DNA of 63,997 bases, the filler included, from Reticulomyxa filosa (taxonomy: Eukaryota; Protista; Foraminifera): NCBI GenBank assembly GCA_000512085.1. It is 19 parts of 19 records of this genome, joined end to end, with 100 filler letters (N's around TTAATTAATTAA, not from the genome) between each part and the next. Parts side by side here need not be neighbours in the genome. Positions count along the whole stretch, not along the records: positions 46,906 to 53,813 come from ASPP01009730.1; 18 more parts are not named here. The stretch is one strand, 5' to 3'. How positions within the stretch are numbered: position 1 is the first letter of the stretch; each line of letters starts with the position of its first letter. The notes beneath the pieces were generated by a model. The model worked only from the letters and a program-made list of their open reading frames with translations. It searched no databases and was not told where the DNA came from. Positions 3,384 through 54,026 of the stretch are shown one piece after another. Position numbers and translations under genes: made by a program.

Positions 3384-3819
3384 GCCGTCTTTTGTAGGCG
3401 AACCTTTTTTTAATATAAGGCTCCAAAAAAAAACACTTCGACAAAATAGCCTTTTAAAACAAAAAAGTACTTTCTTCATAATTGCATCAAACTTAAAAAA
3501 AAGCTAATGATGTTAGTTCGAACTTTCAAACTTGCTTAAAAATTATACATTTGTTTTGAAAAAAATGCAAAATTTATTTTATTCATCTGATCCTCTTAAC
3601 TGTTTGTACGACTTATCATTAAACATGATAACGCAAATTGTCACTAACTTTACACAATAGAAGATAGCAATTAATTCCAGTTATATTAAAGTTCATAAAT
3701 TTTTTACGATGAGTATAATTGATAAAAAATGTCAAGTGAGCTGGAAGATTGAAATTATTATTAAAAAAAAATCAAAAGAAATACAATTCACAACAAAAAA
3801 TTTTTCAATCAAAATTTGA

Positions 3820-46805: not shown

Positions 46806-47014
46806 NNNNNNNNNNNNNNNNNNNNNNNNNNNNNNNNNNNNNNNNNNNNTTAATTAATTAANNNNNNNNNNNNNNNNNNNNNNNNNNNNNNNNNNNNNNN
46901 NNNNNAATTAAAAAAATAAAAAAAAAAAAAAAAAAGAGGGAGGTCACTATCCTATACATATAAATATATACGTATATGTATATGTATACGTACATGTATA
47001 TGTACGTGTAACGA

Positions 47015-47473
47015 ATGCGCATAGTATATATGGATGCGGGTGCATATGTTCGCCGTCCATTGGATGAAATGTACGCATTTTTAAGTGCACCGGAGAATGC
47101 TGAACCATATAAGGGCGTGTTGTTTTTTGGAGTGGGCCTGCCTCAAAAAAGATGGTGCAAGAGGGACACGTTTATTTTGCAACAATGCGACGAAGAAAAA
47201 TGTTGGGAAAAAGGACAAATCAATGCATTTATGAGTATTTGGGTGAAATCTTCCTTCTCTCTTTATTTGAGTCGGCTATGGTTAAATGAATGTCTCGACG
47301 CACGAATCCTTACCGATATCCCCAGCACGCTTGGACCCGAGTTGAATGGATTTCGAGCCCATCGGCACGATCAAGCTGTCATCACCAACATTATGAATCG
47401 TGAAGGCTTCGCCTATGGTCCCAAAGGCTGGAATTTGCTTAATTACGTCGTCCACGATCGAAATACTGCATGA
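47015..47473 (+). CDS. Putative glycosyltransferase of the DAG..WxKRD..HRHDQ family (last exon)
   Basis: VYMDAG, RWCKRDTF, QINA, WLNECLDARILTD, FRAHRHDQAV. Confidence 0.7.
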   Translation: MRIVYMDAGAYVRRPLDEMYAFLSAPENAEPYKGVLFFGVGLPQKRWCKRDTFILQQCDEEKCWEKGQINAFMSIWVKSSFSLYLSRLWLNECLDARILTDIPSTLGPELNGFRAHRHDQAVITNIMNREGFAYGPKGWNLLNYVVHDRNTA

Positions 47474-48425
47474 TTATTAGTCTTTCGGAAATACTTATCC
47501 CTTACAATTATTTTAATTATTTTTTTTTTGTTGTTTTTGTTGTAAAAGAACAGAGGATTTATATGTTTCTTCAACCTTTTGGCCATATTCATTTCAGATA
47601 AATAACAGTCAAAAAAAAAAAAAAAAAAAGTTTTTTAATTTGTTAAATAAAAATACTCACAACATTGCTCTTTTTTTCAAGAAACCAATACTTTTCATTT
47701 CAATCGTTGCCGTACTTTTCTCATTAATAAAATAATTTTTTTTTTTGTGTCTCATTTTTAAAAGATATTGTAATTACTGTTACGTAAATAATCTACACAT
47801 TATCAACTGTTATTCAAGTTGAAATAAACATTCACTGGATATTATTTCGTTGACATTTATGATATTATTTGTACTGCCAAAATGACATAACCTTTATTTC
47901 TATTTGTCAATGTCCGATTGTATTAAATTTGTTTGATTTTTTTTTTAAGTTTTTCATCATATAATAATTACTGTTTTTAGCCCTTTCCTCAATGCAAAGT
48001 ACAAACAAGCACATGATCCAAAATAGGACATGTAACTAAATACAAACTAAAAAAAGTATAAATATATAATCAAACGATCAATTAAGCTTTTTTTTGAAAC
48101 AAATTTTATCAAAAATTTTAAAGTATTTCAATTTTCAAAAGATTGTTTAGAAATCATTTCAAATTTTACTTATTATTTAATAATGGTGAGCTTGCTTGGA
48201 TAATCGACTAATTGCTTCAATGCTACTTGTAATGGTACAGTTTCATTTTTCAATTCTCTTATTTCATCTTATTGATCTTTATTTTAACTATTATTTCTGT
48301 TTTCATTCTTCTTGTTCACTTGATCGTTTGTTCTGTTTTTATTTTTAATTGCATCACAACATCTTTGTGATTCGTGACTTTGGATTTTTCTTTTATATTA
48401 TGATAATTTTCAATTGTTCATTCTT

Positions 48426-48794
48426 CTAAATTATTTTCTTTTTTTTTTCGATAAATTCACTAATTGTATTTCTTGTTCTTTGAATAACACTACATAATAT
48501 TGAATTACTTGCCTGATTTACTTTGCATAATACACATTTCTGGAGCATTGGATTTCTTCTATGATGACAATTTTCTAATTTGCGATTTCTTTTTCCACAA
48601 TACCTGTATACTTTTGAATTATTGCAATCTTTTGCAAAATGATTTAGCGTGAAACATTTTTTGAATTGGATGAAATGTGATATTATACAACGTCCATACT
48701 TGTTAAAGATTTTCCATTTTGCTTCATTAAAATAAATATTGATAATCTTTTCATTTACTGATATTTGAACATAATTCATCTTTGTAACTATCAC
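48426..48794 (-). mobile_element. Degenerate gag-like ORF1 of a non-LTR retrotransposon with three Zn knuckles
   Basis: QFKKCFTLNHFAKDC, VYRYCGKRNRKLENC, KCVLCKVNQASNSILC form a decayed CCHC triplet. Confidence 0.7.
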
Positions 48795-49161
48795 TTTTTG
48801 TCATGTTAGAATTTATATTTTCACAATATTTTCGAATCTTTCAAAATGAACTTCAAATCTTGGTAGATGTCAAAGTAAAACTCTTGCTTGTGATTTTATC
48901 TACTTCAAAAAACAACTTTTTAAGTTGAAAACTATAAAGTTTCATATTTTTTAAAATTTGTTTTGAAAAATTATATTCACTTGACGAAAAGTTTATTATG
49001 CAAAACTGCAATATATTGTCAGATTTTATATCGAAATATCGATAGCTACAATCTAGAGATAAAAAAATTTCATTAAATGAGCATATATGAACATTTATGT
49101 ATTTATTCATGAAAATCAACATTTATTCAAAATTCTTTTTTTAGATTAATATCTACGCATT

Positions 49162-49326
49162 GTAGAAAATACAAAAATATATTTGATTTTTAATAAAAGT
49201 GTAAAAAAAACTGTAAAAAATCATTAATGTTTTTTTCATTTTTGTAATAATTTTCAAAAAATAAAAAAACATTAACAATTTTTAAATAACTTTTTATTAA
49301 ATCAAATATATGTTTGTATTTTCTAC
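49162..49326. repeat. Foldback inverted repeat (MITE-like)
   Basis: gtagaaaatacaaaaatatatttgatttttaataaaagt is inverted as actttttattaaatcaaatatatgtttgtattttctac; inner arms ttaatgtttttttcatttttg / caaaaaataaaaaaacattaa. Confidence 0.75.
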
Positions 49327-49987
49327 GAACAATAATAAACAAGAATATAATTATCACAATTCATAATAAATGCTGTTTTTGTGTATGTAATTTGTCTTTG
49401 TTCGTTGTTTCGTTCAAGAAAAGTTATTTTCATATTTATGCAAAATGTATCTGCTTATAAGAGCTTGACACTTGATAATAATTTATAAAAGATGAAAATA
49501 ATATTCGTAAATTTAATATTACTTCATATAAGTCTATTTTTGTTTGTATTTTTCATTTATGAAAAGAACATAATAATTTCAATTAGCTGGCATATGAAAA
49601 ATATTGTTATTTGTTCAAAATATACAAAAAACTATTATTGTTTTATTAGCTGAAAAATGCACTTGACATACACTTTTTTATTTTAATTTTTTTTAATAAA
49701 AATGTATTTTTCACGGTTTCTGTGGTAAGTAGTAGCCGGCATTGACAGAAAGTGCTTGTTTTGCAACTAAAAGATACTTTAATCTTCCACGAGTTGTCAG
49801 ACAAAAATGTAATTAAAAATGTATGTACTATTTTTGAAGTGTGATGAGATATTCAGCATGGGCATGCTCATAAAAAACATACAATGAAGTGTATTGGAAA
49901 AATTCTTCGCTTCATTGGTTGTTTCATCTTTTTATTTTTTAACGAAAAAGCGAAACTTTTTCGTTCGCAGCTAGCCCCCTTGAAAGA

Positions 49988-51016
49988 ATGAGTTATTTCT
50001 TTCGTCGTTCACTTCGTTCGATAAGTATAATGGCACAATCAGGTATTAAACTTTCCGAAGAGCGGTGGAAAGCACTGCAGCTTTCGGTGGCAGTGACAAG
50101 CGTTTCAGTTGACGAGTTAATTGACGCAATTTCAGCTCACAACAAAGGAGACGGGGATATCGGAAGTAACACAAGACAATTTCATCAGTGGTTGAGACCA
50201 TACTTGTCAAAAATCCAAACTAATATAATCAAATTGGAAGATAAAAAGCAAACATTGACAGAAACGAACAAAACACTATGTGACGAAGTCAGTAAATTGA
50301 ATAATGAATTATTGGCATTACAAAGCAAATTTCCTGGACAAAACAACAACAGTGATGTTCAACAACAGACGAAAGCTTCTACTAAAACTTCCACGAAAGT
50401 TTCAGAAGAAGTAAAGAAAGAGGAGAAATCTGAGCCGTCCAATTCGGCACAATCGGACGCGAGAGTTGCTGTTGACACTGGTTTGCATGTTATCAAAGGA
50501 GCCATTGTCAAAGTGTACAATATCCCCACTGGTGGCACAACACAAACGGTTCATTTTAGTGATGAGCCTTGGGTAGGTGCGATTACTGTTGCACATGACA
50601 GCGTCACCAAACCAGATGACAATACCAAAAAAAGTTACGTATAATTTTTTTTTTTGAAGCCAGAAATTTCTTAAACAAATTCTTTAAAAAAAATGTTAAA
50701 TAAAGAAATTGAAGATTATTGCAATGAATTGATCCGCAAAAACGTGGAGATCACAATTCATAAAGATTTGGATAGACAAGATGCTGAAAAAAAATTTGGA
50801 CCGGAGATTTATGATGCATATCCAGTCCCTGCAAAAGTTACTCGATTGAATGTTTTAGAAATTGCACAATGGAATGTCAATTGTTGTCCCAAAGTTCACT
50901 GCCAAAGAACTGGCGAACTCATTGGCTTGAAAATTGGAAAAATTAAATTTAATAATAAAAAAAACAGTGTGAATATCTATTTCAAGGTGGGACCTGAATT
51001 TTCTAATTACTCTTAA
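49988..51016 (+). CDS. AlaX-S-type trans-editing aminoacyl-tRNA deacylase with an N-terminal coiled coil (2 exons, 318 aa)
   Basis: Intron 50634-50705 (phase 1, GT-AG) joins DTGLHVIKGAIVKV.. to IEDYCNELIRKN..RQDAEKKFGPEIYDAYPVP..LNVLEIAQWNVNCCPKVHCQRTGEL..KIGKIKF..IYF. Confidence 0.85.
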
Positions 51017-52752
51017 AAGAAAAATGATTTAAACAAATAATGCACCTCTTTTTTGCTTATAATAAAGTTCATCTTTTAGATTCCTCAAAAGACTTTGATG
51101 TGTTTCACTCAACAAAAAAAAGCAATATCAACAAACAGTAATCTAATATCTATTTTACCATTCGCCAATTCTAAAGCATTGAAAATAGAAGGCCACAATC
51201 TATAAAAAATTATGGCACACGCACAATTTTTTTAAATTTTTTCACTATTTACAGTAGATTGAAGAAACTGAGCACTAAAATATTATACTATTAAGATGAT
51301 TTTCTCTAAAAAAATTTGTTTTTTGCAAACTTTTACTTGATTTTCATTGCTTTTTTCCATTATATTTGCTTTTAATGTATTACACTAAATTATTTTTTAT
51401 TGCTTTTTAAAGATCGGACTTTACATTGTAATTTTTAATGTAATTATGTTGATTTATCACTTAAGCCCACTTGATGTGAGTGTACATCTGCGTAATCAAA
51501 AAGAAAAAAACAAACAATTTCATATACTTTTTTGTGCAGTATTTTTGATTATACTTAAGATTTTATGGTACAAATACAAGTAATGTTTATAGTTAATATG
51601 ACACAAACATTAATTGTTAATTTAATACTTCTTGTTATTATTTGTGTTGTGATAGTTGATTGTTGTTTTGTAAATGCTGTACTATGTGTAACAAGAAAGG
51701 TTATATTTATGTATAAAACAATTAATGTTAATTCAATAGTTATTATATATAAAAAGTTAAATTTAATGTTCACTTAAATTTAATGACAATAAATATGTAA
51801 TCAAAATGTAGCAAATATTGCATTTGTAGCAATAATTACGACGTCATTGCATCAACAAAGTTAGTTAATGATTGGCTAAATCACTTTATAAGTGAATATT
51901 CTTTTGATGTAATGCTTACGGATTGCGTTTTTACTAAAAAATAACATGTTTTAGATATTTGTTCACAAATTATTGTTATTTTGTTAAAAGGTATCAAAAT
52001 TCTATACAAGTTAGATGCTATTTTTTTGTCTACATACTTGGAACTTCGTTTCGATATCGATATGTCTGCTTTCTTACTCGCAAATGTTTCTGTTAATTTA
52101 TCTTAACTATATTGTGGCTACTATTTCTTTTTATCATTATATTATGATGTTAAAATGAAATATTGACGCCAAGAATCTTAGTCAAAAAATTCATAATCAA
52201 CTTTGGTCGTATCATTTTGCAAATGTCATAAACTAAAAAAATTTCTGTTTTGGCAACATTTAACACAAAAAGTGAAAGCTAGCTAATATTCGTTCTCCAT
52301 TCAAAGTTAAGATGTGATAAAAAACTAACTACAGCCTCAAAAAAAGTTGAAAGGATAAAGTAAAAAAAGATAATTTGTGTTTCCATTTGTCCTGATACAT
52401 GATCATCGCTTCAAAATATAATAATGTTGACGAAAGGTTATGTAAATGAGATCCTAAAAAAGGCAAATGCTTGGCTATAACTTTGAGATATCACATACTA
52501 TATACGAAAAAGAAAAAGTAATCTCATTTTTGTCATCTTTACGGAGAATGACCGTAAACAATTTATTATTGAGTATGAAATTGACCATTATCAAGCTATA
52601 ATTTGCAATATGCTTGACTATTCGATACTGACAATAATTCAAAAAGATAAAGGTAATTTTTCATTTTCAGTACTGTTATATTTTTAATTGGTCAGAGTTG
52701 GAGCCAAAGTTTTTTTAAAAAGGGATTTTATCAATATAGGTTGTCATCAACA

Positions 52753-53260
52753 ATGAGCACTAATGAGCACTTGCCTCGCAAAGATTTCAAAGTTGGAGAT
52801 TATGTAGTAAGGAAAAATAAATTGGGAAAAATAATAGAAGTTCACTGGGACATGCACCCGCCTTCGTTTACAGTTAAAATGGAGGAATCGGACGATTTGG
52901 TGAACACGGAACAAAGCGCCATCCGACATGCAAACAAAGATGAAATACCGCGTCAAAACAAGCCAATTGTTTAGAAGAGGAAAAGAAGACCCATACAAAT
53001 ATATATAATGTGTGTAAAAAACAAAAGAGGATTTTGAAAAGCAGCGAGCAAGATTTGAATGTGTATTGGGGGGGGAACATTAGGCATGGGCGTGCACAGC
53101 CTGTACGTATCACAATACAAACATGGATAGCAAAGAATGTGAGCTGTGCACAGAAAAGCGTACTAGCTTTGAGATATTGATATACGAGAATGAAAGAGAA
53201 GAAGAACTAATGTTAATGGACATTGACGACCGACAAAAGACAAGTAGCAGTGAGAGTGAC

Positions 53261-53297
<37 letters not shown>

Positions 53298-53728
53298 GTA
53301 ATAACAATAATAATAACAATAATGGTAATAATAACAGTACCAACAATGATAACAGCAATAATAATAACAGTACCAACAATGATAACAGCAATAACAATAA
53401 CAACAATAATAACAATAATAATAACGATAATACAAATAACGACAACGATGAGAAGATGGCAATAGCATTATCGATGACAGAAAGCAAAGATGACAAAGAA
53501 GCAACGACAAAACAAGAAGTAAGGTTTATGACATACAATGTATGGTTCGATGAGGAGTGTTGTGTATTGGAGAGGATACAAAAGATTGGCGAAATGATAG
53601 ACTTGTACAAGCCGGACGCTGTTGCTTTGCAAGAGGTCACTCCATTAATTTTGGATATTATCCGTAGCAGCGACTGGTATATCAAAGATCGTTGGACCAA
53701 TACCGTTACTTCACTGCAGGAACATTCG
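52753..53728 (+). CDS. TDP2: TDP2-like EEP phosphodiesterase with an N-terminal SH3-like domain, RanBP2/NZF finger and UIM (3' partial)
   Basis: Intron 52969-53083; WACTACTYHN..CELC; DEKMAIALSMTES; RFMTYNVWF..ERIQKIG..PDAVALQEVTP. Confidence 0.75.
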
Positions 53729-53775
53729 GTACGAAGAAAACAAAAGGAATTGATTTGCATTAATATATACATATA

Positions 53776-53810
<35 letters not shown>

Positions 53811-54026
53811 ATANNNNNNNNNNNNNNNNNNNNNNNNNNNNNNNNNNNNNNNNNNNNTTAATTAATTAANNNNNNNNNNNNNNNNNNNNNNNNNNNNNNN
53901 NNNNNNNNNNNNNCAACAACAACAAAACCATTGCTGTTAATACAATTTAAACCTAATTTGTACTTGGTAACATGACAGTATTACCCAAATTCAAACAAGA
54001 ACTGGGGAATAAGAAATTCCGGCACA

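Follow-up and report, generated by a model that had tools for sequence, protein, structure and literature searches.

The window analysed here, a 63,997-nt stretch of Reticulomyxa filosa (Foraminifera) DNA composed of 19 joined parts, contains in the piece derived from ASPP01009730.1 (positions 46906-53813, 6908 bases, no N) the gene RFI_13424, encoding a free-standing protein with a domain of the small AlaX type (AlaX-S). Judging from alignments and trees, the gene belongs to a eukaryotic AlaX-S-like branch in which the first His of the zinc site was replaced once, usually by Asp. The most likely function predicted for its product, to which a probability of about 0.55 was assigned, is that of a zinc-dependent trans-deacylase of Ser-mischarged tRNA. 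AlaX-S is described in reviews from archaeal enzymes, and the usual eukaryotic AlaX is of the large AARSD1 type. An earlier interpretation of the same DNA, made without database searches (the sequence-only reading), had recognized here an AlaX-S-like protein of 318 amino acids and presented it as an archaeal-type factor, horizontally acquired or patchily retained, and domesticated in a protist.

The AlaX-S-like domain

A search with the second of the two RFI_13424 exons alone identified AlaX-S of Pyrococcus horikoshii (structures 1v4p, 1wxo, 1v7o and 1wnu; E 7e-20, residues 58-150 of 157), and the end of exon 1 weakly matched residues 6-30 of the same protein, so that the exons code for neighbouring portions of a single domain. 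The whole domain could be aligned with residues 6-150 of the 157 residues of 1v4p with E 2e-26 in phmmer. The peptide strings quoted in the sequence-only reading are present in the protein, and the similarity of its C-terminal 160 residues to the P. horikoshii enzyme is borne out by this match.

The structural comparison led to the same family. The AlphaFold2 (AF2) model of residues 135-304, for which an alignment of 92 sequences was used, had a mean predicted local distance difference test score (pLDDT) of 94.8. Among PDB entries, Foldseek ranked 1v4p and 1wnu at the top, with a template modelling (TM) score relative to the target (TMt) of 0.91, a root mean square deviation (rmsd) of 1.6-1.7 Å and 38% identity. 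The next matches were archaeal AlaRS editing domains, with a TM score relative to the query (TMq) of about 0.76, and the AlaX-M structure 2e1b scored far lower (TMq 0.57). The search of the Atlas of structures returned archaeal AlaX at TM 0.87/0.93. No DHHA1, tRNA-synt_2c or tRNA-synt_1b domain was detected by Pfam in the full-length protein (P0001, GenBank ETO23756.1), and the open reading frame (ORF) stops at 51016 with no C-terminal extension. The Reticulomyxa domain is thus of the AlaX-S (type I AlaX) type, judged by fold and sequence to descend from AlaX-S and predicted to act like it, a variant within the family, on the same branch as the AlaX-like domain (AXD) found at the N-terminus of apicomplexan tryptophanyl-tRNA synthetase (TrpRS).

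The domain is preceded by a helical arm and a linker. The arm showed a weak collinear similarity to the N-termini of the related proteins of Elphidium and of a TARA Oceans contig (E 3e-3 and 8e-4, respectively), was alignable over all full-length foraminifer-type proteins and gave only weak matches to coiled-coil-type Pfam families. An N-terminal two-helix arm followed by a disordered linker is common to the foraminiferal proteins. In the protein of Elphidium margaritaceum (P0122, 369 aa; zinc-site residues E-H-T-L), the N-terminal coiled-coil segment is tandemly duplicated, giving two copies of about 70 aa.

Relatives and phylogeny

The exhaustive phmmer search of exon 2 against 1.84 billion representative proteins resulted in 117 clusters (50% identity) matching at E 1e-3 or better. 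Foraminiferal relatives comprised a protein of Elphidium margaritaceum as well as MMETSP and EukProt proteins of the same architecture. Amoebozoan relatives came from Dictyostelium species, Polysphondylium, Heterostelium, Tieghemostelium, Acytostelium, Ceratiomyxa, Gocevia, Copromyxa and Luapelamoeba. In three matches, the domain was located N-terminal to a class I TrpRS catalytic domain, one of these being the TrpRS of Theileria equi.

A maximum-likelihood (ML) tree of 92 domains was constructed, as was a second one with eight foraminifer-like rows. The AlaX-S-like group was split from the AlaRS/AlaX-M/L-type editing domains with 100/100 support and a branch length of 2.59. Together with the structural scores (TM 0.91 for AlaX-S versus TMq 0.57 for AlaX-M), this upheld the assignment made in the sequence-only reading to the AlaX-S type rather than to AlaX-M, AlaX-L/AARSD1 or synthetase editing domains. 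All non-HxxxH sequences formed one clade of 58 rows (support 91/82), with Reticulomyxa inside it and the small stand-alone HxxxH proteins outside, and the change from His to another residue at the first ligand occurred once on the tree. The phylogeny proposed alongside the sequence-only reading therefore agreed with it as to the AlaX-S-like group, and departed from it in placing the protein in a eukaryotic subclade, not among archaeal rows. The foraminifer-like clade was supported at 100/95, and at 100/94 in the second tree.

A loop of the form IPT(G/A)(R/K/G)TT, reading IPTGGTT in Reticulomyxa, is common to the foraminiferal proteins and the AXDs of TrpRS; the amoebozoan loop lacks three residues by comparison, and that of archaea differs. 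A sister relationship between the foraminiferal clade and the TrpRS AXDs was not supported by the tree (86/5) and is retained as a tentative idea based on this shared loop only.

In the literature searched, no description of a free-standing eukaryotic AlaX-S-like form was found, only papers on TrpRS. The free-standing Asp-variant clade thus appears to be undescribed, its members being deposited in databases under generic names. The sequence-only reading had named prior documentation of the subtype across eukaryotes as a ground for giving it up; such documentation exists for the TrpRS-fused form and was not found for the free-standing one.

Residues of the zinc site

Four zinc ligands of the AlaX-type site are named in the literature (PMC3680381, PMC12003907), and the HxxxH motif of this HxxxH/CxxxH site was called universally conserved in the superfamily in a 2025 paper (PMC12003907). 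In the alignment to 1v4p, three of the four named ligands are kept in Reticulomyxa and the first is Asp.

The combination H-H-C-H was present in 34 of 34 AlaRS, AlaX-M/L-type and HxxxH-type small AlaX-S rows in which the positions were represented. In the eukaryotic clade, whose 58 rows are cluster representatives, many of them from metagenomes, D-H-C-H was the commonest state, with Asp at the first position in 34 rows, His13 in 46, Cys116 in 41 and His120 in 43 (numbering of P. horikoshii AlaX-S). The column equivalent to Thr30 was 98% conserved in this clade. In the complex of AlaX-S with serine attributed to Sokabe and co-workers (2005), Thr30 is said to be the residue that discriminates Ser. 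D-H-C-H was also kept across a path of about three substitutions per site, leading from Reticulomyxa to the amoebozoan Ceratiomyxa. When position 1 was occupied by Asn, Ala or Glu, the CxxxH motif was usually lost too (67 kept/kept and 18 lost/lost, with 3 and 1 mixed), which is the pattern expected if Asp is a ligand.

Within the foraminifer-like clade, only Reticulomyxa and its TARA relative had D-H-C-H. The residues are E-H-(S/T)-L in Elphidium and its group, and an independent loss of the site occurred in one more foraminifer-like relative. Because Reticulomyxa and the TARA relative kept the four residues while sister lineages lost them, the pattern suggests selection on the site in the Reticulomyxa lineage.

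Independent losses were also noticed in at least two further sublineages among amoebozoan-type sequences, in the P0024/P0029/P0040 group (A-H-V-Y) and in the P0041/P0129/P0130/P0141 group (N-H-(S/T)-(L/V)). Site inactivation, as judged from the residues, is recurrent within the clade. Cys261 (50882-50884, the first C of NCC), adjacent to the ligand Cys, was 86% conserved in the eukaryotic clade versus 71% for the ligand Cys; it was kept in members without an intact site, and P. horikoshii has Ala at this position.

Proposed function and alternative explanations

The deacylase function is favoured because the ligands and the Thr30 equivalent are kept, D-H-C-H persists deep in the clade and the loss of Asp tracks the loss of the remaining residues. 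What the analysis establishes is how the gene is built (judged by homology), how its domain folds, to which family it belongs and which residues occupy the site; metal binding, catalysis, substrate and the role of the arm are what we infer. One Zn2+ ion would be bound via Asp149, His153, Cys262 and His266, and the ester bond of Ser-mischarged tRNA would be hydrolysed in trans. The putative substrate is Ser-tRNA(Ala), perhaps along with others, since archaeal AlaX-S was reported to act without tRNA specificity. The coiled-coil arm may serve in forming oligomers or in attaching the protein to a partner. In a broader and rather doubtful scenario, the free-standing proteins of Foraminifera and Amoebozoa would be active Asp-His-Cys-His deacylases representing the ancestral form of a domain that was later fused to TrpRS and inactivated in alveolates. 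The foraminiferal arm would then link the protein non-covalently to TrpRS or a multi-synthetase complex, providing a trans-editing layer distinct from AARSD1.

Several observations weigh against a deacylase. The HxxxH motif is not intact in Reticulomyxa, reading DTGLH, and editing was considered unlikely for the Plasmodium AXD, another domain with Asp at position 9 (PMC3680381). Phylogenetically independent pairs of co-loss were 4:0, in the right direction and not significant (p 0.125), the comparison being underpowered. The Pfam profile tRNA_SAD (PF07973), a model of just 44 positions with which the sequence-only reading was to be checked, gave 14.1 bits for exon 2 versus a cut-off of 24, and no match to P0001 at E 0.01 or better; the check fell short on this profile and succeeded with phmmer, and the relatives P0008, P0009 and P0022 score above the cut-off. 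A look-up of sequencing runs for this stretch listed none from RNA; the predicted splicing of RFI_13424 is based on homology, and its expression is presumed. Of the eight foraminifer-like sequences, six (Elphidium, two transcriptome-derived proteins and three from metagenomes) are missing two or three ligand residues out of four, Cys116 and His120 included, in domains that are about 50-56% identical to that of Reticulomyxa. The ligand columns ranked from 24th to 50th of 156 in conservation within the clade; better conserved were the columns of KGA, Thr, R..AE, YD and WN.NC, kept even in site-losing members. Because the ligands rank below KGA, R..AE, YD and WN.NC, the clade may have a conserved function other than catalysis. 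The lost ligands of these relatives and the rank of the ligand columns agree with the main alternative, a non-catalytic tRNA-binding or synthetase-accessory factor, in which the fold would hold tRNA, the arm would dock to a synthetase, possibly TrpRS, and the ligands would be relics. The apicomplexan AXDs fall in the same non-HxxxH clade and have the loop in common with the foraminiferal proteins. Pf-WRS requires its AXD-containing N-terminal region for binding tRNA and for aminoacylation (PMC3680381), and the fusion in other lineages of the stramenopile-alveolate-Rhizaria (SAR) group hints at a functional link to TrpRS. Moreover, site-losing relatives with a complete N-terminus retain the arm. 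Such a factor is a credible explanation, if not the likeliest one, but Reticulomyxa retains Asp, His, Thr, Cys and His, and no state is commoner in Amoebozoa than D-H-C-H, which the TARA relative has as well. The chance that four residues of a functionless site would persist unaltered along about 0.5-0.9 substitutions per site was roughly estimated at 0.03-0.13.

Direct transfer of an archaeal AlaX-S into foraminifera or Reticulomyxa, with later gain of the intron and the N-terminal extension and independently of the amoebozoan and apicomplexan genes, would fit the best solved-structure and Atlas matches, which are archaeal AlaX-S. The GTDB relatives of one small HxxxH protein were almost all from thermophilic archaea, and in the approximately unbiased (AU) test a clade of foraminifera with archaeal AlaX-S was not rejected (p 0.227, log-likelihood difference 9.4). 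However, the ML tree nests the foraminiferal clade in the non-HxxxH clade, apart from the archaeal rows. The change of the first ligand occurred once, and the loop insertion shared with the SAR TrpRS AXDs is absent from archaea. Identity to archaeal AlaX-S was only 32-41%, no close relative of the Reticulomyxa domain was found in the GTDB representative prokaryotic genomes in a search that reaches close relatives only, and the gene is present also in Elphidium and other foraminifer-type transcriptome and metagenome sequences. Phylogenetic grounds therefore speak against an independent archaeal origin, which is considered improbable, the case against it being made by the best tree and two shared derived characters, not by likelihood rejection. 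With relatives in foraminifera, Amoebozoa and apicomplexan TrpRS inside a clade supported at 91/82, the archaeal-type acquisition put forward in the sequence-only reading was not supported. It is still less probable, to the point of being very improbable, that the locus is an assembly contaminant or a decaying pseudogene without a functional product. The contig is short (6.9 kb) and splicing was deduced from homology, but the frame is intact in both exons, the intron is AT-rich with canonical GT-AG ends, the flanks are AT-rich in a eukaryote-like manner with a poly-Asn tract in a neighbouring ORF, the AF2 model is a confident one, and the closest relatives include foraminiferal transcriptome proteins (Elphidium, MMETSP) of the same architecture.

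Gene structure and start codon

In the ORF list, two plus-strand ORFs, 49988..50644 and 50693..51016, are the halves of this single gene (Table 1). The window DNA was searched exon by exon, and P0001 served as the full-length protein after its identity had been checked. According to this exon-by-exon check, P0001 (304 aa) equals translated 50030-50632, Lys and translated 50708-51013, with exon 2 being 100% identical to residues 203-304. The intron splits codon 202 (Lys, A|AA), of which position 50633 is the first base; it starts with GTTACG and finishes with AAATAAAG. Its GC content is 0.18 versus 0.41 in exon 1 and 0.32 in exon 2, and the unspliced reading frame terminates at the stop codon 50642-44. 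The removal of the 72-nt intron was deduced from homology, because alignments to archaeal AlaX-S and to all relatives are free of gaps over the junction. In the related gene on the TARA contig (L001), the coding sequence is uninterrupted at the position of the Reticulomyxa intron.

RFI_13424 is thus confirmed, at the level of sequence, as a genuine two-exon nuclear gene of R. filosa. The sequence-only reading was right about an intron-containing eukaryotic gene; the spliced model starting at 50030 is identical to ETO23756.1. The gene was not hidden by the ORFs, since the spliced model is already in GenBank, as 'hypothetical protein RFI_13424', and in UniRef, as 'Threonyl/alanyl tRNA synthetase SAD domain-containing protein'.

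Table 1. Features of RFI_13424, with positions counted along the window
Feature	Positions	Strand	Description and basis
Upstream in-frame ATG and 13 codons	49988..50029	+	Outside the GenBank model; no counterpart in relatives
Exon 1	50030..50633	+	Residues 1-201 and first base of codon 202; identical to P0001 residues 1-201
N-terminal helical arm, coiled-coil-like	50033..50329	+	Residues 2-39 and 44-100; AF2 full-length model
Disordered low-complexity linker	50342..50452	+	Residues 105-141, rich in Lys, Ser, Thr, Glu and Gln; pLDDT about 30
AlaX-S-like editing-domain fold	50456..51001	+	Residues 143-300, split by the intron; AF2, Foldseek, phmmer
DTGLH motif	50474..50488	+	Asp149 replaces His9, His153 corresponds to His13; alignment to 1v4p, 92-domain ligand table
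Thr170-Thr171	50537..50542	+	Equivalent to Thr30 of P. horikoshii AlaX-S; in the IPTGGTT loop
Intron	50634..50705	+	Phase 1, GT-AG, 72 nt, with an in-frame stop; gap-free alignment over the junction
Exon 2	50706..51016	+	Last two bases of codon 202, residues 203-304, TAA stop at 51014-16
CCPKVH motif	50882..50899	+	Cys262 corresponds to Cys116 and His266 to His120 of CxxxH; Cys261 is extra

The gene on the TARA contig (L001:3205-4281; contig of 7386 bp) has the same architecture with DTGLH and CC..H motifs, and its domain is about 52% identical. It has an intron of its own (3654..3779, 126 nt, phase 2), which precedes the domain and does not coincide with the Reticulomyxa intron; the gene caller divided the gene in two.

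The 318-aa protein assumed in the sequence-only reading would start at 49988, which is unlikely. Translation is likely to start at 50030, giving 304 aa, since in the foraminifer-type relatives of full length, from Elphidium and with one protein each from MMETSP and EukProt, an initial 'MA' is aligned to Met15 of the 318-aa ORF. The region 49988..50029 is probably a 5' untranslated region (UTR) or an alternative start. The 14 upstream codons are basic and Ser-rich with no acidic residue, resembling a presequence, and the upstream ATG may give rise to an organelle-targeted alternative isoform. Mitochondrial targeting via these codons was set aside, as the relatives start at the aligned Met15.

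Surrounding DNA

The piece is AT-rich, with about 37% GC in coding stretches and 17-27% in spacers. Searches of Pfam and PDB with the neighbouring ORFs gave nothing solid, and tRNA and Rfam scans of the piece found none. The ORF 53123-53782 (plus strand) contains an AAT-type repeat (53261-53432) and a long poly-Asn tract, after which comes a stretch with a weak match (E 0.017) to the tyrosyl-DNA phosphodiesterase 2 N-terminus; the ORF breaks off at an intron or where the piece ends. The plus-strand ORF 47015-47473 (152 aa) lies in the GC-richest part of the piece (0.43), has no match in Pfam or PDB and is probably an exon of an uncharacterised gene. On the minus strand, the ORF 48426-48794 (122 aa), located in an AT-rich spacer, has a Cys/His-rich stretch resembling a zinc knuckle and no Pfam match; it may have arisen by chance or be left over from a mobile element. 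Simple repeats of the TATATG type and AATA are present at the contig ends (46955-47010 and 53762-53813) and probably explain why the assembly stopped there.

Significance

As a single-gene result the finding is modest: the protein is already in GenBank, its domain is automatically annotated, and it does not represent a recent archaeal transfer, so that the surprise of an archaeal-type enzyme hidden in one protist is much reduced. The remaining interest lies in the clade as a whole and in the Asp variant of a motif called universal. The locus leads to a sizeable eukaryotic AlaX-S-like clade that encompasses Amoebozoa, Foraminifera and the apicomplexan TrpRS appendage, with the first ligand usually being Asp. 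If its members are active, they would form a second eukaryotic trans-editing system with a metal site tolerating Asp, so that the HxxxH called 'universal' for the AlaRS/ThrRS editing superfamily would have an exception. They would also represent the probable active ancestor of the TrpRS appendage of apicomplexan parasites, an appendage with a debated role. Should they be inactive, the clade would exemplify the recurrent reuse of an editing fold as a tRNA-binding module.

Comparison with known systems

The Reticulomyxa protein has in common with AlaX-M and AlaX-L/AARSD1 a homologous editing core with CxxxH and, presumably, the theme of trans-editing of mischarged tRNA(Ala). AlaX-M and AlaX-L have an extra N-terminal subdomain, and AlaX-L also a C-Ala/DHHA1 domain, whereas the Reticulomyxa protein is devoid of these. 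Recognition of G3:U70 was reported for AlaX-M and AlaX-L (PMC11295145), and the biochemistry of archaeal AlaX-S is known from PMC11260482 and PMC11295145.

With AlaX-S of P. horikoshii (PH0574), the protein shares a single-domain editing fold, collinear over residues 6-150 and free of a synthetase, in which His13, Thr30, Cys116, His120, KGA, R..AE, YD and WNVN are conserved. The two differ at His9, which is Asp149 in Reticulomyxa, and in the 3-residue insertion in the IPTGGTT loop. AlaX-S has 157 aa, whereas the Reticulomyxa protein has 304 aa, including 140 aa of N-terminal coiled-coil arm and linker. It is encoded by a eukaryotic nuclear gene with an intron, and its activity is predicted, unlike that of the characterised P. 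horikoshii enzyme. Of the typical traits of AlaX-S, the size of about 150-160 aa and the intact HxxxH are missing from the Reticulomyxa protein and CxxxH is present.

The published AlaX-like N-terminal domain of apicomplexan TrpRS was compared by its authors to the type I AlaX of P. horikoshii (PMC3680381). The AXD was reported in alveolates and Ectocarpus and is found in the cytosolic TrpRS of Perkinsus and Ectocarpus too (Khan et al. 2011, 2013; PMC3240968, PMC3680381). In Plasmodium, the ligand positions are occupied by Asp9, Ser13, Asn116 and Val120, and editing was judged unlikely by the authors (PMC3680381). The AXDs resemble the Reticulomyxa domain in being on the same non-HxxxH branch, in having Asp9 (in Plasmodium and several fused rows) and the shared loop and in coming from SAR lineages. 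They differ in being fused to a TrpRS catalytic domain and in the loss of Cys116 and His120, and in Plasmodium of His13 as well, whereas the Reticulomyxa protein is free-standing, keeps His153, Cys262 and His266 and has the coiled-coil arm.

The amoebozoan proteins, annotated as hypothetical, 'SAD domain-containing' or 'putative alanyl-tRNA synthetase', form a separate clade (98/85). They differ from the Reticulomyxa protein in an insert before the conserved IYD and a C-terminal extension, and in having neither the N-terminal coiled coil nor the IPTGRTT loop. The extension (the C-terminal 90-110 aa of P0008, P0009, P0034, P0136 and others) ends in the helix motif LKN.AY..GF, corresponds to no Pfam family and is absent from the foraminiferal and TrpRS-fused proteins. 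The amoebozoan and Reticulomyxa proteins are alike in belonging to the same non-HxxxH clade, in being free-standing and in having D-H-C-H, which is found in most of the amoebozoan sequences.

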